Assembly (NCBI GenBank): GCA_009103225.1
Contig: RHPI01000026.1
Span: forward strand, 553,210 to 617,209
From: Chlorokybus atmophyticus
Lineage: Eukaryota > Plantae > Mesostigma and Chlorokybus algae
Direction: 5' to 3'
DNA length: 64,000 nt
Positions 5,466 to 18,100 of this stretch are shown here, piece by piece. Each line of letters begins with the position of its first letter. Positions within the stretch are counted from its first letter, which is position 1. Made by a program: the position numbers and the translations under genes. The notes below the pieces were generated by a model, which saw only the letters and a list, made by a program, of their open reading frames with translations, was not told the origin of the DNA and searched no databases.

Positions 5466-7500
5466 TCGTAAGTGATAACTTGCTCACAATGCGCAACAAG
5501 ACGCACATGTCCAGGTGACTGTAATTGCCATGCTTGTATGACCAACAGGAGCGCAGTAGTGGTACCCTGCCATTACGCGTAGTGGCAGGGTTAGAGGTAG
5601 TAAATAGATAGCACTACAGTACAGAATTATAGTACAGGCGATTAAGATGATTAAGTTGATGAGTGGTTGTGAGACTGCACGTTCACATAGAATCAAATAA
5701 GCGTAATGCCCTTTGCATCTCTTGTACACATAAATATGATATTATGCACATGCCCATTAGGGTACAACCCATATGCAATTACAAGCACATGCATGCCACA
5801 ATCCTCGCATATTATATGTTGTATGGCGATGTTGAACATTGCATAAATTGTAAACAATGCACAACCAGTATATGCATGTGCATGTGGTATATAACAACGG
5901 GCTAGTGCCCTTACAGTTGTTGCGTTTGCGCACTGTATTGTGTTATTTAAATATTAAAGAAGGCAACATGTAAGCACGTGGATATCAAATGAACCTCTAT
6001 TACAGCTTGCGGGCATTGCAATGCTTGACGCGCAAGTGGCCAACCAAGCATGAATGCAACTGACGGCGTTTGATCACGAGAACCATTGCCAATAGCATCA
6101 ATGCCATCGTCGTCGTCGCGATAATGTGTTTATAGTCATAACGCATGCAAGAGAGAGAGCAAGTGGTTAGCTCTTTATCCTGCGCCCTTTCTTGCCCCGT
6201 TATCGCCCTCAGGGCGTAGCAGAAAAGATGCTAATGAAATAACCTTGCGAAAATACATCGCATTTTTCCTTACGTGCACAAAGATTACGTGCAATTGCAT
6301 TGCATATCCCGTCACGCCATGCATAATGGATGCCACAATCATACACGTGACGCATGATGACTACCGGCAGTGCTAAGACTATTCCATACAAGCAAATATA
6401 AGTTCAAGCAATTGAATGCGGACATCGCAACTTCAATAGCAATGCACCGCTTTTGCATTCGCTTGCATGTCGGCCTCATAAATCTATATACAAGCCTCAT
6501 GACATCTTGAAGGAATCGATAACAAGTTAACTTTGATGTTTAGCAGTTGTGAGAAAATTTGGTATTTGACATAAACTGCATTGCTATTGTTATGGAGGCC
6601 GGATATATAGGCTTTTCGGTAGTACGAATACAATTAAGCCAGGGTGCACAAGCAACTTTAAGGACTTTGTATTGAGTTAATGCTGATGTTTATGAATTGC
6701 GAGGAAATTCGGTTATTGACATAAACAGCGTTGCTACCGTTACAGGGGCCGGGTACATAGATTTTCCGGGTGGTACAGATGCAGTTATGCCAAAGTGCAT
6801 AAGCACAGGCAACTTGAAAGACTTGGTAACGCGTATATTCCGATTAACCTTCCGGTGGTTCAGATGTAGTCATGCCAGAGTGCACAAGCTCAAGCTCAAG
6901 CACACGCAAAGAAACAGCAAACCGAAACAGTGGCAAGGGCAAATTATCAAGGCGATGGTGTGGGCATGCTTTGTTATGTGCTCATAGCTAAATGCACGAG
7001 CGGGGTGGTTGGGGCGTCGGGCAGCAACAACAAGCAGGACAGACCTGAGCAACATGTGGTTATACATGTTTCATCACACGGCATGCGCCAGTCGATCTTG
7101 CCCTAATGTCACATTGTATGTTGGCAACGTAAACGACAAAAAAGCTGAGGCAAGTGCAAGTGCATCATGACTCAAAATCACATCCGTTAAGTAACTTAGC
7201 GAGGTGGTCCGAACACCGTTTCTCCAAGAGCATGCGAGCGCTTTCCGAACGTGGCTCTTACAGCGAGGGCAGACTGTATTGTTGTCCGCGGCGCGGCTAG
7301 AGGTTTCTTCGCGCAAGCTGACTTGGCTCAGCTGAGCAAGCAGCTGCCGTCCAGTCCCAAGCTAGTGTCACTTGCCGTGGCCTAAGGCGGCGGCGGAGGT
7401 GGAGCAGGCGGCGGCGGTGGAGGAAGGGGCAGGAGAAGAAGGAGGTGGTGGAGGGGAACGTGGAGGAATACGCAAGGGGAGGCAGGCTAGCGCGCCAGCA

Positions 7501-10500
7501 ATGGTTGCGCTAAAGCTTCTGCTGCAGCTGGTCGCCATGGTGCTGCTGGCGGGCATGGCGGGAGCGCAGACAAGCGCACTGGAGAGTGCTCTGGACGTCC
7601 ATGAGAACGTGCTATTGGCGCTCCGCAATGCTACCCTTGAAGCTTACCGTAACCGGCAAGGTATGGACGTCACTTCATCAGGCTGTTTGGTTTCTGCTCT
7701 GCCATGCTTGGTCAAGCAAGTGCAATGCGTAGATTGCAATGTGGGGCTTCTGTTTTATATGCTCGTGCCAACGCCACTGCCGTTGGTCTACTGTTATGCT
7801 TAACACGGTGTTGGAACGTCGCGCACGCATGACAGTCAGTGTCGCCTGCAGCCTGCAGCACTGCTTGTGTAATGCTCTCTGCTGCTGCATTGCTGTGTCC
7901 ATGCTGTCTCCAGCTGCAATGTGCTAGGGCTTAGCCTTGCACTTCTGGTGATATCAGAGTCAGAGAAGCATTCTCTGACCAAGTGCGCATGATGCTTGCT
8001 TTATGCTGGAAGCTCAACATTCACTTGATCAAGCTGAGTGAAAGTTAATGCCACTGCGCCTAAAATTTTTTGTAACCAGTGTATAAGCTGGAGCAAGCAA
8101 AGAGTGCACATCCAGCATCTGTTTGCATACATGCAACTCATTACCTTCAGCTGGCAGCTACCACCAGAGAAACGTGGATACTTATGTTATTCTTGGTTGG
8201 CAGCTTCGACAGCAAGCTGCCAGGCCAATTCCCCCTTAGCATTCTCCTCAAACTCTTCCTTCTTCTTGCCGCTGGCATGCGACGTTGCGAACATCAACAG
8301 CAACTCCGTGGTCTGCACCGACGTCTCCGGCAGCTCATGCACCAGCACAAGTAACCCCCAGTGCAGCACTAAAGAAATGGTCAACACGCAAAGATCCTAT
8401 GCCAGGTTCGATGTGACAATGACACCGTCGTAACCACCGTTGTTTGTAAGTTTTTTCTGTCCCTAACCGATGCTGTTGTTGTCATCATCACATAGGATTC
8501 CGGCAGGCCAGTTGCAGGATCAGACGAGCGCAGTTCAGGTGTTGTGCATGAGATTTTTTGCAACATAGCAAGCACGTGTTCCTTGCCAACAGCACAAGTT
8601 CACAACGATCCGTATGTTTAAATGTAAGCTTAAGTTCAATATATCAGGGGGCGCTGTGCTGGTTGGGTGCGGGCTTGGACAGCGCACTTAGGAGCGAGTT
8701 CAATAATGGCAACATCGCCTTTTTGCTGTACTTTGGATCCGCCACGGGCGCTTTTATCTCCTTCCCGGGACGGGTATGGACCTCCCCATACCTGACTTAC
8801 CTTGAGCTTGATTGATGACGGTTGTAACGGTGTTGGTCATGCTTGTTGCAGCAAAACAACTTGTGTGCTTGCGGGACGACGGATCCAGCATGTCTCAACT
8901 ACGACCCCCGCCAGCGCTATTGGTATGCTCAGTCATAATAACGAGTGTTATGATCCACTGCTGCTTGCAGCAACCATGCATCAACCCCTCAATCATGCAC
9001 CACACATACAGGTATCCTGGCGCGAGCTCCATTGCAAAGGACCTGGTGGTTGTCCTGGACATGGACGGGCAGATGGGCAGCGACTTCAGCCAAACCTTGC
9101 GCAATGTCACAAAACTTGATGTACGTACTGATCATTGATGGTGACGGCAAGCACAACATGGTCACGTCATGAACGCTTGTTCATCACCCACTCATCACCA
9201 GGTGGCCAAAAGCGTCATAGAGAACCTGCTCCCGACGCTCTATCAAGGGCGAGATCGGATGGCAGTGGTGATATCCACGGCAGATGGCGATGGGGCCCAA
9301 ACACTGCCAGACAGCAACTCTGACCTGATAACGGTAAATCCATTGCAAATGACTAGATTGATTTGTATATTCTGTTTGTCCTGTGTGACAAATCTTCAAT
9401 CATGCACTCGCGCTGCAGGCCACAGATTATCCAACATCGAGCTTCGCAAGTCTGCAGCAAGCAGTGGCAAGTTTGAGTGTCACAGACCAGAAAGCAAATA
9501 TAACTGCTGCCATACTTGAAGCGCTTGACATCGTCCAGAGCAGTCGGTCGGAAGCGGTCCAGAAGATTGTGCTTGTGTTGGCGGGTGCGGAGACCCAGGA
9601 TGATGCGCTGGCCGCAGTGAATAGCACCTCACTCGCGTTGTCAATTCAGCAGGTATTTTTGTGTAGCAATCGTTACAAAAAAAGCCTGCTATGGGTCCAT
9701 TTTGTATATGCTGCCAGCATAAACACACAAATGAATGCACGCACATACGCACTCATGCTCGCACGCATGCCAGCGGTTGCGCACACGCGCACGAACGCAA
9801 ACAAGTTCTTGCTGATGCTCAGGCTCAGAACGCGGTGAACGCAATAGGAGGAGAAGAGAGCCTTGTCACGGCTATATATGCCATAGGGTCCAGGGAGGAT
9901 CCTGTCGAGAGCTTGATAAAATGTAAGATTGCCCAGTGGTTTGACTCTCAAGCGATGATTGCCCAGTGGTTTGACTCTCAAGTAATGATAGTTGTCGTGT
10001 CTAGGAACATTTGACAATGGCTGTATTCTGTTCTGCGCTGCGCAGCTGTGGCATGCAACACAGGTGGGTTTTACGGCAGCATCACCAGCAGCAACAACCC
10101 CCTTGGCGACATGCGGGTGCGTGTGCGCGTACGCATGCGCATGCATACCACATGCATGTGCTTGTGCCCTTGTACACATCGCCATACGTGACGAGCGCAT
10201 CGTGTCGCACACATGCATGTGGTAAGGTTGGTTGTCCACCAGGAGTACTTCAATTACCTAGGCAATGCCATGGCAAGCGCAACAGGGGCGCAGTGGAGCT
10301 ATGGTGTAGCCTTCACGGCTGTTGGCAGCGAGGACAACGCCACCCTTGCGGCCTCCATGCCAGGTATGTTGCACTGTGTTTTGTGCCTCTCTTTGGCAAA
10401 GACGCACACTGTAACTTTTGGTTGCTGTGGTTTGCAGTGTATGATGACCAGACAGACACTCTCGTTGGCGTTGTGGCCCTCGACCTGCTTTTGGCAGATC

Positions 10501-11234
10501 TCGGCAGAGTAAGCAAGACAGTTTTTTTTTTCTTACAATTTCTTTCTTGCCTCGCCATTGAGGCCACAGTACTTCATCTTCAGACACCTGACCGTTGAGT
10601 CATTCAGACACCAGGCGATCCTGAAGTGGATGACGCAATAAAGACCCGCAACACGGCCCGCGCCACGCAAGCGGCTGCCAACCTGGCTGCGCCCTGCTTG
10701 GGTGAGAGGGTGATGGACTTGACCGACGCATGCGCAGCCTCCCAATGCGATCCCGCATCGCGCCAGCCCAAGTCCTACCCGATCCTCACAGACGCTGCAC
10801 GCGGAGCTCGGGAGCCCGCACCGCAAAATGGCCTTAGCTTTCAGGTTGGTTGCCGTGTGTTGTCTTTGAATTGGTTTGGTATAAACAACGCAAACCAACA
10901 TGTGTCTTGTATGCCAGGACCTGGTCTGCTGTCCCGAGTGTGCTGCCAAAGGCACTCAGGCAGCAGGTGATGGAGGGTTGTCCACTGGCGCGCTGATCGG
11001 TATCATTGCTGGAGGTGCAGTCTTCTGCCTGATCCTCCTCGCTGTCATTGCTGGGCTGCTGTATCGCAGGCAAAGGTGCGTGTCCACGCATGAGTGCGCT
11101 ATGAAGCACATTTGCGCGTGATATTACCTTATGCCAGCATACCAATCTCGTCCTCTCATTGCAGAGCGGTCATCAAGGCGCGCAAGCAGATCGCACCCCC
11201 CAAATTGATGGGCGAAAACATCGCTGACCTGTGA
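7501..11234 (+). CDS. alpha2delta (CACNA2D)/CACHD1-like type I membrane protein: signal peptide, dCache_1 split by a VWA domain, TM helix, short tail
   Basis: Signal peptide MVALKLLLQLVAMVLLAGMAGAQ. Spliced motifs ALCWLGAGLDSALRSEFNNG, LYFGSATGAFISFPG, YDPRQRYW|YPGASSIAKDLVVVLDMDG, VACNTGGFYGSI, EYFNYLGNAM, QWSYG, PVYD..LVGVVALD. These parallel animal alpha2delta-1 [86 protein letters not shown]; last exon 11165-11234. Confidence 0.85.
9927..9986 (+). repeat. 30-bp tandem duplication in an intron
   Basis: gattgcccagtggtttgactctcaagcgat followed by gattgcccagtggtttgactctcaagtaat. Confidence 0.9.
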
Positions 11235-12066
11235 CACATCTGATCTGATCTCTCAGATATATATAAGCGTTCAGACGTGTACGTCGGATGGCGAAGGAAG
11301 CTGGGTCCTGGTCTCCTAAGTGTGTGCGGGACCCTCCACCTAACCAGCTGCGATGCACAGCATCACAACAAGCAGGAGGCACTGCTGCAGACTACCACCG
11401 TCAGAAGGTGTTGTCGGTATTGCTCAGTCCTGCCACTAAATAAGCGTAGAGATATTCTTAACCATAGCGGTTGTGTAGTGACACACTCTGTACATATTAC
11501 CCAGTGCACGGTGAGTATGCGTGCACTGCATGGCATGTGCGCGTGCAAGTACAGGAAGCCACGGTCATGTATCTGCATATGTGTGTGCGTGTTTTGGATG
11601 ATAGCAGAGTGCGTTGCATGAGCAATAGTATGAATGTGCAGATGTGTATGTTTGGTTGGTGCGCAGGCTGCTAAGGGCGTGACACAACGCACACTCCACA
11701 CAGGTAACTTCAGTAAGTGTTTGCCGGGAGTGCGGGGGGTGCTTGAAAGACGAACGAGAGGGTCAGAACTGATTGAGGTCGCGTGCTCTGGTCTCAAAGT
11801 AGTCAATACGATGCATCAATGGCAGGCAGATGATTGCCAAAAGTATCGCGCTTTGCACGCAACAAAATGAAGCATGGTCGAAGATGAACACGACAACCAA
11901 CCCGCAAACAAGCAAACAACTCTGAGGTTCTGGTCTATGGTAAATGCATGCAGCGTCATACTCCTGCAGGTCATGCCAGATCTCTGCCGGCATGACCGTC
12001 ACAGTTGTCAATGCAGTGCTGGTGCGCTTAGGGTGGACTAACCGTGCCCCGGGGGGGGGCGGGGGG

Positions 12067-12878: not shown

Positions 12879-15800
12879 TTACACGAGGTTTATGTACACG
12901 ATTTTGGAAAATAAACATGATCGCAGAAGTGTGATGTAAGCTTGTGTCCACCCCTGGCCAACGCTTACCAAACGCGTTGCTTGTCGAAGTAATCGGAACA
13001 CAAGCGGCCGCTGTTCCTGCTTAGCAACGGAGGGTGAGAATGAAAACACAAAAGAAGCAGATAGGGCACGAAGAACATCTGAGGCAATTGACCTGCTTTG
13101 CGTGCCAGATAGAGCAATCAGCTTTTGCACACAAGCCTGCATGTGGCACTCCTGCAGCTCCTTCTTGATGCTGCTCCTGGCAGCGGACTTCTGATTCTTT
13201 GGGAGGCTATCAAGCTGAACATGCACCACCTGCATGAGCAAATCCACTGCGTAACACCGGCCCCGATCATCGCTCAAACCCATCCCGCGAGCAAGGACTT
13301 TGAATAAGAGAGGCTGTGCAAACAGCAGCAGCATTGAATTCTCATCCTTTAGCTCCTTGTGTAGAATAGCGAGCACGTACTCAGCACCAACAAGAGGATC
13401 GTTGGTAGCACGCGGCGTGTTCATGAGCAGCTGTGCAAGGCGTAGCATGACGTAGAAGTAGAGCCCCCCCATCTCCGCCTTGTCGATTATAGCCCGGCGC
13501 ATTCTTGCCAGGACGGATGGCTGGACTTTGATCAGTGAATACAGAATGCCGAGAATGCCACGCAGGAGCTGTCCACCATCAACGCTGCCGTAAACTGAGT
13601 CCACACCAAACTGTAGCACCCGCATTAGGGATTCAACGCCGCCTCCCGCAGCAATGATGCACTGGTTGCAGGTGGCCGCCTGCATTGCACAATATAGACT
13701 GAGCACCAACCTGACCATTCCCCTTGTCAGCATCAAGCAAGGACATGACCTTCTCTTCATCTCGGCAGAAATGCAAACATGACAAGTCCACTGCTTGGAC
13801 ATCGTGCGGCATGTCAAGCAGTGGACAGATTGCATACATGTCCATACCCTTTGTGCATAGTTGGCTTGTTGATCTGCCCCATGGTCTTGGTTCTGTATCG
13901 CTGTCATGACGTACAACACATGAACGGCTAGCCCCACTTGTTCAGGGATTGCTGATGTTCCTTGGCTGAGGCTGCTGCTCGAGAAAGCGCTGATCTTGTC
14001 CAACAAACGTGGCCCGCCCTCTCGTGCGTTGAACATGCTCCTTAGGAAAACCATGCCCTGTGCATCGCTCTCACACGCCAGTTTTAGGAAAACCCTCATG
14101 GCCAGACAAGCAGTCACGTCCTCCGCCCTGAAAGCATCCACAAACAATCCTAGCACACCTGCATACAAAAACCATTTGACGATGAATTCGTCTGGCTGCC
14201 AACGGGCGTGATGACGTTCAGCCACCAGGAAAGTACACTGAACTGACCTGAGTCTTGGCGCATGCAATCTGGTATGTAGTTGTTTGCAAAAGGCATGCTC
14301 AAGCCTTGGTGATGGACAAGGGTTAAAAGCATGGAGAGCACCATTCTCCGAGTCTCAACACTTATAGCAGCATGGTAAGCTCTGGCACACGCTTGCAAGA
14401 TGTTACTGCTGCTCGCGACGAGAGCAACAGCTTCGCTCCGCTGGTCCATGCAACTATGCAGACAGTACACGGCATCACTGGTCGTGCCAACATCAACCGC
14501 ACTGCAGAGCACGTTGATGAAGGCTGACACGGCAACTTCAGGATGCACCGCAAAGACTTTTAGCGCAGAGTTGTTTGCAAGCAACGCCCGAAGAGCGGCA
14601 CAGGCCAGTGCAGCGTGAACAGAGTTTAGAGCTTGGAGCAGGAGTAGTTCATCCGACAGCTGGACTGGAACAGCAAAGCTCGGAATCCGTGAAAGATTGC
14701 AGGCTGACTCCAATAGCATGGCTGAGGTGTCCTCATTGCCGGCGAGCTCCATGTCGAATACAAGCATCCGCAGTGCGTTGATGGTAGCATGGTCGCAGCT
14801 CTCCAGTCCCAGAGCAGCATCTGGGCTGCGAGTCAATAGGCAGAGCGATTGGGTCACCTCGCATGGATACGCGCGACAGACTGCCCAAGCCAGTTGCAGC
14901 ACAATGCGCAAGTGCTGCGTGACAAGCACTCGGCAAAGGCTGTTGTGTGCCGACAACGCTTTCAGCAACTGCACGGCTGCAAACTTGGCCTTGCTGTCTG
15001 CATCAGCTGCTGCGGCCTGCAGATCATGGCCAGCCATTATATATTAGGTGTAGAATCGCGGCACTGGATGTTTAACTAAACAACACAGGCATTGAGCAGG
15101 TACCTGGGTGAAGAGGCCAACAATGGGTCTAAAATCCAGGTATGCCTCATCCACAAAGTCCAGACGAGCAACGAGCTGCAGGACAACGCTACGGTCCATG
15201 TCTCTGTCAGATGGGTGCAGCGAAGCCAGCAGGTTGAAAACGGCCTCTGCTTGCAGGTGACGTCCGATGCCAGCTGCTTGCGGATCCTCGCCAATTGCCA
15301 CAAGCACAGCCGCCGTAGCCATCCTCTCATCAATGTGGCGGTTGCTGTTGAGCAGTCCAATAAGCACTTGCAGAGACTCTCCTTCCAGAAGAAAACTCCT
15401 GTCGTGTAAACATGAAGAGGGGCTCTTCGCCAGTTGTACGATTGACTTCAGGGCATCAACTGCGTGTGCACCACCGGTATGAGCACAACTCAGCAGCAGA
15501 GGAAGTCCCGAGAAGCACGGCACGCCAGATATGCCCGTCATTGGACCTCTGCACGCATTGCACGGTGCAAGGTGCAGCAACCCTCGCAGCAGCCATATCT
15601 GACTGTCAATGCAGCACAGAGACCAGTGCGCTGTTATGGTGTCAATTGCGCCAAGGATGCACAGCTCTTGGCGTGTTGCATCACTACACCGCTCCACAAT
15701 CTTGGCAAACAACTGCACTGCATCTTGGGCATCCATGACAATCAAACGCAGCAAAGGTCTCCTGTTCTGCAAGCCCTCGACAGCACGGAGCACTGCATCT

Positions 15801-18100
15801 GCATCTGCTTCAAAAAGCAGGCACAGGGCGCTGCACAGAGCTTGCTGAACAGCATCAGCTTGGCTGGCTGCTGTGCTTCCGCATAGAAGCTGCACGAGCA
15901 GAGCAGCAGCACTTTGAACATCAGAGCGGTCGCAACCTGATTTTCTCAACTCCTGGCTTAATGTCCTTATCGCTGACGTGCGTGCATCCACCTTTCCAAG
16001 GTGCGTCAGCTGCATCAAAGCCCGTATGTAGCCATCTCCGGAGCCTCCGCATTCTGCAAGCACAAAAATAGTTAAGTCCCGCGCTTTTCAGCAAACTCCG
16101 GGCGAATCAGCAAACTCATCAGCTTGCTTAGCAAAGCGCACGTATGTGCGTGCATGGGTACACCAAGCAGAGAAGCGCAGCGAAAGCTAGGGATACTGCA
16201 ATGTTTGTCATCATGTTGGATGCAAAGTGATTACCTCCAGGTGGAAAAGCAAGGGCTGTGAGCGCGTTCTTGGCTGCCTGGGTCTCTTCAGCAGTTGCAG
16301 TGGAGACACAAAGGCGCATGCAGCTCTCAATAAGGCTTGACTTTTCTAGAAGCATGCTTCTTATGTCGTTGAAGCGGCACATCTGAAAGAGCACTCCGGC
16401 AGCCGCAATCCGTATGCGGGAATTGCGGCCGGTTTCAACTGCTGACAGAAGTGCTGAAAGCTTCTGCCAGTAATGCGACGAAGCCTGTGCGTACAAGCGG
16501 GGTTGTCAAGATGACACGTAGTAAACGGCTGGTAATATTCTGATGGCTTACGCAAAGTTTGCCTTGAGAGTTACCTCTTCCAGAAACATTGTTTTTGCGT
16601 CCTCTGGAAGATGCTCAGAAAGAATAGCAAACAAGCTGGCACAGCTCTCAACAAAGTCTCCAAAGCAGTCGATGGATTGGTTTGGCAGTTGCTTCCAAAT
16701 CATGGTAACAGCCTTTCTGTTCTGCTCAGAACTAGCAATACTCTCGAGTATCACCGTGTTGCCGCTCTGCACACTCATGCTCACGAGATTGAGGAGCTTG
16801 TTGACGCCACGACGCCGTCTAGCGTCACATCTGGAAGCGACATTTGCGATAGCATGACTGAACTCAACCAAAATGTCCGACGAGGGAGGTCCGCTGAGAT
16901 TGCTGTCTTGCGATGTGCTACTAAGCGCCGGAGATGGAGGCGGTATCGCAGCCATGGAGATGTCGCCGCTGTAGCTTCGTATGCTCAATGGTGACAAGGG
17001 CGGCATCATCATTGGCTCTGTGCCTGTTAACACATTCGCTTGTTCTTGTGCTGGAACGGAGCTCACATCTTCAGCATCCGACTGACCCTTGTCACTGACA
17101 GGTAACTGTAACACCTGTGGAACAGGCTTTGAAACAATGACATTCGTACTACAAAGCCATAACAATTTTATATTTGCGCGACAGATGCACACGTGGACTG
17201 TGTGCTAATGATATCTCAAGACTGTATGTGCTGTATGTGTACCTCAATGCTGTCGCTTTCAAAGGACCGAAATGTGGGCGGTGTCAACTCATACTGCAAA
17301 GGTTGCTGACTTGCGTCCACTTTGGCATGCAGTTGTTGCAGTTGCTGCGTCACCATCAGCAGCATCTCTTCAACGTGCTGCATGCGGGCATCAGAAGCAG
17401 GCTGTTGGCTTTGCTGTGTGGACTGTGCTAGGACACCCGACAGCGACCGGTCAATCTGGCTGAGAGACCTCTCAAGCCTGTGGATGTGCCTTGCGTGCAT
17501 CTGCTGACACACAGATTGACCTGCTTAGCATCGTAAGCGGGCACGCTTAGCATGCAGGCCTCAGGTCAGTATGGCATTACAATCAGAGTGACATATCCTG
17601 TGACCGGACAAGCCAATCCAATGTCACATTGTGTTTAAGTACTGAAACCAAGCAAAGGCTTGCACAGCCATAGGTGCATGCAAGGGTGCTGTTGGCAGAT
17701 TGAGAAAGTTGTTAAGCTTCAGGCCAACGAGTTAATCATGCCGTGAACAAGAAAAGCCCATAGATCACCTGCATATGCGCAAGGGACAGGCTTGCCAGGC
17801 AGCTGGTGATTTCACTCTCAATTGACTGCAAGGCAACCAGGGAGGCCATTCCGTTTTCAAGGGACGTGCAGCAGTTGTGCAACACGCCCTGCAGCTCATT
17901 CAGAGTCGGCTGCACACTTATGTCCACTGGCTTTGGAAACCCTTCCATGGTGCTGCGCAACAGCTCCACCTGCACGACGGGAATCATTATGCATGATTAA
18001 CACTGCCCCAACACGCAGGCCTAAGCTAGCCTGTGCAACACAACCGCACAACAAGCTCAGCTTTACTGATGGCAACGTGCAATATGTCAAGGCCTAACAT
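12879..18100 (-). CDS. Large ARM/HEAT-repeat protein (roughly 1400 aa) with N-terminal helical/coiled-coil region; start uncertain
   Basis: Long consecutive minus ORFs (12879-14267, 14150-15037, 15044-16063, 16128-16496, 16548-17192, 17216-17512, 17736-17987) are joined by GT-AG introns, e.g. HMQ|QMH and LEE|ASS. Amphipathic ARM-like segments include AAGGGVESLMRVL, GAIDTITAHW and IAAAGVLFQMC. Exon 1 (MLGLDILHVAISKAELV, ATG 18100) is inferred. Confidence 0.7.

Follow-up and report, generated by a model that had tools for sequence, protein, structure and literature searches.

The 64,000-nucleotide stretch of Chlorokybus atmophyticus DNA analysed here, referred to as the window (assembly GCA_009103225.1, contig RHPI01000026.1, positions 553,210 to 617,209 of the forward strand), carries at window positions 7501-11234 a plus-strand gene, real and expressed, which encodes a protein of 634 amino acids that is a secure member of the alpha2delta/CACHD1 superfamily. 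In this protein, a VWA domain is inserted in a Cache module whose amino-acid pocket is complete, and the MIDAS (metal ion-dependent adhesion site) of the VWA domain has been lost. It is a new, divergent member of an already catalogued group, its particular features being the MIDAS loss with the pocket kept, the extreme divergence and an exon mis-annotated in the public gene model, while the rest of its biology is as expected from the 2022 survey of Gumerov et al. (PMC8915833). Regarding its significance, the gene comes from one of the deepest streptophyte lineages and brings a member verified by transcripts into the eukaryotic Cache+VWA family, to which alpha2delta-1, the target of gabapentin, also belongs; it displays a natural separation of the two functional sites of that family. 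If its ectodomain binds amino acids, it would serve as a small model, with one module, for experiments on the alpha2delta pocket.

Membership in the alpha2delta/CACHD1 superfamily

Database and structure searches were made with the public 604-residue version of the protein (P0001; eukprot jgi/Chlat1/7163, Chlorokybus), and local alignments and the tree with the 634-residue model. In a Pfam scan, VWA is the sole family at the gathering cut-off (23.9 bits against 23.8), with VWA_N far under it (expectation value, E, 0.17) and no match to VGCC_alpha2 or CACHD1_C; the single exons give a weak VWA match only. A phmmer search with exon 8, a poorly conserved piece, recovered from 1.84 billion representative proteins only the protein itself, and neither the whole protein nor residues 105-240 matched anything else in word-indexed searches. 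Against the PDB, the best 13 phmmer matches are all alpha2delta-1 (E 0.016-0.04), in an alignment that keeps FGSATG, YDxRxRxWY and KDxxxxxD in register throughout, and the neighbours found by a language model are protist VWA proteins, alpha2delta and CACHD1, the last represented by sequence clusters. The piece following the VWA domain, searched against the PDB with phmmer, gave chance matches only (calmodulin and designed Kelch proteins, for example), and pairwise sequence alone is for that reason unable to place the distal pocket residues Y436 and D472.

Homologues were sought in metagenome contigs with a back-translated YDxRxRxWY-x7-KD-x5-D motif, a degenerate DNA pattern of fixed spacing carrying about 41 bits. 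At least 120 homologous loci were found, against fewer than one estimated by chance; all 120 listed loci translate in frame, and they also share conserved residues beyond those imposed by the pattern, for example YFG, GPKD and SGSM. From these, 39 distinct full-length open reading frames (ORFs) of 539-976 amino acids were retained, having a signal-like start and mostly a transmembrane helix and a tail at the end, and they were aligned end-to-end with P0001 at 18-27% identity (alignment A1). Among the members of A1, Pfam recognizes VWA in 38, MCP-like_PDC_1 in 15, dCache_1 in 10 and VWA_N in 2.

The A1 profile matches alpha2delta-1 with E 3e-67 (profile positions 124-459 to residues 146-498), CACHD1 with E 2.6e-37 and, in the motif region, PctA, PctB and PctC with E 4e-9 to 1e-5, as well as other bacterial Cache sensors across the post-VWA half. 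As for the Chlorokybus protein, it keeps 25 of the 38 family-conserved columns that were not forced by the search pattern, including six of the eight conserved cysteines. Its position in the tree, beside the homologues L081 and L104, was dropped as evidence, since three long branches meet there.

Using A1 (40 rows) as input, AlphaFold produced a model of P0001 with a predicted local distance difference test (pLDDT) of 70.9 and a predicted template modelling score (pTM) of 0.69; a single-sequence model was discarded (pLDDT 38). The first 14 Foldseek matches of the model in the PDB are alpha2delta-1 and CACHD1. When superposed by VIA-align, it reaches Z 27.6 to alpha2delta-1 (root-mean-square deviation of 3.3 Å over 374 residues) and Z 22.6 to CACHD1, and near Z 15 to isolated VWA domains, with some 150 residues aligned. 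Approximately 220 of the residues aligned to alpha2delta-1 are outside the VWA domain, and the distal module has the PAS-like Cache fold in the model. In the ESM Atlas, the best structural match is a 699-residue diatom cluster (template modelling score 0.60 over residues 22-603), followed by alpha2delta fragments. Thus, the original prediction, made from the DNA letters, of an alpha2delta/CACHD1-like protein with a VWA domain inserted in a Cache is borne out by the profile and by the superposition.

Compared with alpha2delta-1 (CACNA2D1; 8hlp_F, 8fd7_D, 5gjv_F), the stalk helix, the distal module of the first Cache, the inserted VWA domain and the C-terminal helix superpose, and C396 of the Chlorokybus protein aligns with C404. 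However, the second dCache_1 (VGCC_alpha2) is absent, a membrane-proximal module is not predicted, the MIDAS is not intact, and a predicted transmembrane helix with a cytosolic tail stands where alpha2delta-1 has a glycosylphosphatidylinositol (GPI) anchor, the proteins having about 630 and 1100 residues, respectively. CACHD1 (8s7c_A, 9eq6_A) differs by possessing two dCache domains, with the amino-acid motif in the second, plus CACHD1_C, none of which is present in the Chlorokybus protein, and its known partners (CaV2.2, CaV3 and FZD5/LRP6) are animal proteins. PctA, PctB and PctC from Pseudomonas aeruginosa (5ltx, 5lt9, 5ltv) bear the same pocket motif, but they are bacterial proteins lacking the VWA insertion and having a membrane-proximal module and a cytoplasmic signalling domain.

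As described by Gumerov et al., dCache_1AA with a VWA insertion occurs in nearly all eukaryotic groups, including Archaeplastida, and proteins with only one dCache_1 are distributed over diverse eukaryotes, vertebrates excepted (PMC8915833). With such single-dCache_1AA+VWA proteins the Chlorokybus protein shares one Cache unit, where the VWA domain splits the YxxxxRxWY ... Y ... D motif, and, like the 39 metagenomic homologues, a length of about 600-800 residues, inside the 550-900 or so of the short branch, a predicted signal peptide, a C-terminal membrane anchor and six of the eight members of the conserved Cys set; the differences are its missing MIDAS and its very long branch. The system had been supposed to be uncharacterized in this lineage, which is right for experiments but not for the proteins themselves, as the same survey had already reported them in Archaeplastida. 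A literature search for Chlorokybus calcium channels, or for dCache_1 with VWA in algae, found nothing.

Among the metagenomic relatives, the contig locus L110:2776-10842:+ holds a frame of 2689 amino acids, with a YDPRxRPWY...KD...DxSGS block at approximately residue 503 and hydrophobic segments before the block, and it appears to be a very large relative or a fusion of the Cache+VWA unit. Four loci with ORFs of 1316-1393 amino acids (L039, L046, L051 and L082) group closely together in the tree, with good support, and probably belong to the double-dCache alpha2delta/CACHD1-like type. Two short ones, L020:304-2493:- and L070:75-2066:+, end in a hydrophobic stretch with about two residues after it, resembling the GPI-anchor signal of alpha2delta; most other short homologues have a transmembrane helix and a tail of 13-160 residues.

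The pocket and the probably single Cache module

The motif YDPRQRYWY (residues 194-202; 8900..9015) arises, as had been proposed, by splicing over the intron at 8923-9011, the join completing the Trp codon; the chance expectation for a match of the YxxxxRxWY type in a protein of such composition is about 8e-5. The Asp of GVVALD, D472 (10482-10484), also follows the VWA domain as foreseen. Described earlier as largely intact, the motif is in fact complete, with all six pocket residues there: Y194, R199, W201, Y202, Y436 and D472. The distal Tyr had been considered ambiguous between WSYGVAF and WTNVY; it is indeed the Tyr of WSYGVAF, Y436 (10300-10302), and the ambiguity no longer holds, given a near-invariant column with Tyr in 38 of the 39 homologues, Phe in one and a family consensus W-x-Y-x-D. 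Its counterpart in the alignment with alpha2delta-1 is the Tyr of WTNVY, that protein having two extra residues between Trp and Tyr. The column of D472 is invariant in all 39 homologues, and because both columns are outside the search pattern, their conservation is independent evidence for the pocket.

By profile alignment, the six residues correspond one-to-one with Y236, R241, W243, Y244, Y450 and D491 of alpha2delta-1 (8hlp_F numbering), of which R241 and D491 were mutated by Gumerov et al. (PMC8915833). With respect to dCache_1AA, the motif's N-terminal portion (PctA Y121, R126 and W128) is supplied by YDPRQRYWY, which aligns with YDVRRRPWY of alpha2delta-1, and the C-terminal part (the equivalents of PctA Y144 and D173) by Y436 and D472. 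The latter two are spaced by 35 residues, or by 30 without a five-residue insert (residues 443-447) unique to the Chlorokybus protein. Comparing the two domains, 13 of the 14 unforced conserved columns are kept in the Cache module versus 9 of 20 in the VWA domain (Fisher p = 0.009); this retention fits selection on the pocket together with release of the MIDAS face.

Following the chain, a signal-peptide-like hydrophobic N terminus (residues 1-22; 7501..7566) is indicated by hydropathy and by the similar start of the homologues, and it would be cleaved. It precedes a stalk helix and the N-terminal half of the PAS-like Cache module (residues 23-193; 7567..8899), assigned from the weak VWA_N match, the PDB alignment and the model; this segment is VWA_N-like, includes YFGSATG and is aligned with residues 158-268 of alpha2delta-1. 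The VWA domain (residues 210-416; 9037..10116), supported by Pfam, the profile and the structural superposition, lies between the two Cache halves, the C-terminal half (residues 417-480; 10243..10508) being recognized by alignment and modelled as three strands with pLDDT 81-93. A post-Cache helix and a Cys-containing juxtamembrane linker (residues 481-582; 10608..10986) then appear in the AlphaFold model, followed by the transmembrane helix (residues 583-607; 10987..11061), seen by hydropathy and modelled as a helix with pLDDT 80-92. The basic cytosolic tail (residues 608-634; 11062..11231, broken by the intron at 11076-11164) is placed by the splice model and hydropathy; with 27 residues, it is close to the expected 25.

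One dCache had also been proposed, and here the model departs from the original prediction, as it contains only one PAS-like module. No strands are predicted beyond residue 474. In the numbering of P0001, the last Cache strand is followed by a helix (455-476), a low-confidence stretch containing Cys (481-548), where pLDDT values fall below 50, and the transmembrane helix (552-586). When superposed, the post-Cache helix coincides with a C-terminal portion of alpha2delta-1 on its delta side (chain residues up to about 1071). In several homologues, approximately 68-77 residues separate the Asp from the transmembrane helix, too few for a module, and in the Chlorokybus protein D472 is followed by about 110 residues before that helix. 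Since the model shows no further strands and this span is short in several homologues, the family may be read as having a single Cache module with VWA, not a double Cache.

Degeneration of the MIDAS and possible modes of action

The MIDAS loop reads DMDGQ (9058..9072) where the family alignment has DxSxS. Over the five MIDAS positions, 34 of the 39 homologues present DSSTD and the Chlorokybus protein DDQAG: D217 is retained, and S219 is replaced by Asp, S221 by Gln, T307 by Ala (9494-9496) and D337 by Gly (9584-9586). Conserved VWA residues near the MIDAS, namely G305, F334, G338 and T377, are also changed. In addition, two columns bearing Cys in 38-39 of the 39 homologues have lost it, at residue 328 (9557-9559, now Val) and residue 499 (10662-10664, now Ala), a paired loss suggesting that one disulfide of the family is gone. 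Because four of the five MIDAS residues are replaced, the metal-mediated contact used by alpha2delta-1 would be unavailable; to judge from these substitutions, there is no usable MIDAS and an alpha2delta-style metal bridge is ruled out.

Considering all of this, the best explanation, to which we give about an even chance, is a type I membrane glycoprotein of a short, one-Cache+VWA branch of the alpha2delta/CACHD1 superfamily, with a pocket that would bind amino acids or their close analogues and a read-out through a partner or through trafficking. The ectodomain would consist of the stalk helix and a single PAS-like Cache module, whose ligand pocket has its two halves separated by the inserted VWA domain. 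The suggested ligand is a free amino acid or something closely analogous; as in PctA and alpha2delta-1, its carboxylate would be held by Y194, R199 and W201 and its amino group by Y436 and D472. Ligand occupancy would then have to be read out by altered trafficking or by a second membrane protein associating laterally, rather than by a metal-bridged VWA contact, because the tail of 27 residues has no enzymatic domain and the MIDAS is destroyed. Likewise putative are the topology, the signal peptide and any partner protein.

Several points weigh against this explanation. The homologues were picked by the N-terminal motif, whose nine positions are then conserved by construction, and the structural model is that of the 604-residue version, which is without 30 residues of the VWA domain. 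Position 200, a Pro in the family, is Tyr, and V438, two residues after the distal Tyr, stands where the family has Asp or Phe. Moreover, the branch of the Chlorokybus protein measures 2.3 substitutions per site, compared to a median of 0.34.

The protein could instead be a true auxiliary subunit of an algal four-domain voltage-gated calcium-type channel, controlling its trafficking or gating in the way of animal alpha2delta or CACHD1, with the amino acid as a modulator, a rather unlikely reading that is nonetheless compatible with the best explanation. Homology and a fold common to alpha2delta-1 and CACHD1 speak for it, as does the enhancement of CaV2.2 by CACHD1, whose MIDAS is disrupted and whose effect does not depend on D122 (PMC6231325). 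However, a MIDAS is needed for the action of alpha2delta-1 and alpha2delta-2 on CaV channels, and its replacement here weakens an alpha2delta-style contact, so that the earlier suggestion of a Cav-like channel partner is not supported; there is also no second dCache, a further site of channel contact in animals, and alpha2delta proper was found by Moran and Zakon in 2014 in animals only (PMC4202318).

It is unlikely, as a further alternative, that the pocket ligand is something other than a proteinogenic amino acid, for instance GABA (gamma-aminobutyric acid), a polyamine, a quaternary amine or an organic acid. The residues around the core motif have drifted, as seen by P200Y and D438V at otherwise conserved pocket-adjacent columns and by the unique insert; the dCache_1 class binds many types of ligands, GABA among them for some bacterial domains that bear the motif (PMC8915833). 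Nevertheless, the five defining AA_motif positions and Y202 are intact, and this motif predicted amino-acid binding in bacteria (PMC8915833).

The divergence of the protein would also suit a fast-evolving cell-surface or adhesion protein, with a structural or wall-associated ectodomain, in which the pocket residues are merely inherited and sensing has been lost. It has a very long branch, at most 31% identity to any homologue and no close orthologue in direct searches of large databases, besides the loss of the MIDAS and of the Cys columns at residues 328 and 499. We regard this as improbable, given the intact frame over 15 exons, the transcript contigs in two studies and the Cache columns kept in preference to those of the VWA domain, as would be expected from selection acting on the pocket rather than on the VWA face.

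The most far-reaching proposal, that this MIDAS-less alpha2delta relative makes a CACHD1-like contact, independent of the MIDAS, with an algal four-domain calcium-type channel and so couples extracellular amino-acid binding to it, is a long shot; if true, it would directly link amino-acid sensing and calcium signalling outside animals and suggest that ligand control of channel partners is older than the animal alpha2delta subunit.

Gene model, transcripts and neighbouring frames

Three-frame translation of 7000-11800 yields 15 exons on the plus strand that join into a single open frame of 1905 nucleotides (634 codons), with GT..AG at each of the 14 introns. The exons, supported by the model and by transcript joints, are located at 7501-7660, 8204-8405, 8496-8538, 8648-8773, 8852-8922, 9012-9120, 9202-9333, 9419-9652, 9823-9922, 10046-10116, 10243-10363, 10438-10508, 10608-10844, 10918-11075 and 11165-11234, the stop codon being at 11232-11234. 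Two spliced contigs, of 2344 nucleotides (run X1, study P1) and 2195 nucleotides (run X2, study P2), align to the window with zero mismatches, and in both all 14 joints are as modelled. The joining of 8922 to 9012, on which the pocket motif had been predicated, is thereby confirmed by two independent studies. The longest contig, that of X1, delimits a transcribed region of 7404..11573, with the 5' untranslated region starting at 7404 and the 3' untranslated region reaching 11573. Public runs that match the stretch contain about 0.38 of its sampled words, as expected for spliced RNA; labelling X1 and X2 as RNA is a guess, although contigs without introns in two studies are hard to account for otherwise.

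Regarding protein length, the transcript-backed model of 634 residues exceeds both the 600 or so first estimated and the 604 of P0001, which is without residues 387-416 (VESLIK...GDMR; the end of exon 9 and exon 10, 9904..10116). These residues carry the family-conserved A395, C396, G400 and M415, and because the transcripts include all 30 of them, the public model is wrong at this place and is corrected here.

In intron 9, a 26-nucleotide unit, gattgcccagtggtttgactctcaag, occurs twice at 30-nucleotide spacing (9927-9982), just downstream of the exon 9 donor, adjoining the mis-splice point of the public model. A paralogue of the Chlorokybus gene was not found in the window. Just downstream of the gene, the minus strand holds three successive long open frames (462, 295 and 339 amino acids; 12879-16063). 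Pfam gave no match for the neighbouring long ORFs, these three included; the three are probably exons that belong to one large gene, either unannotated or specific to the lineage.

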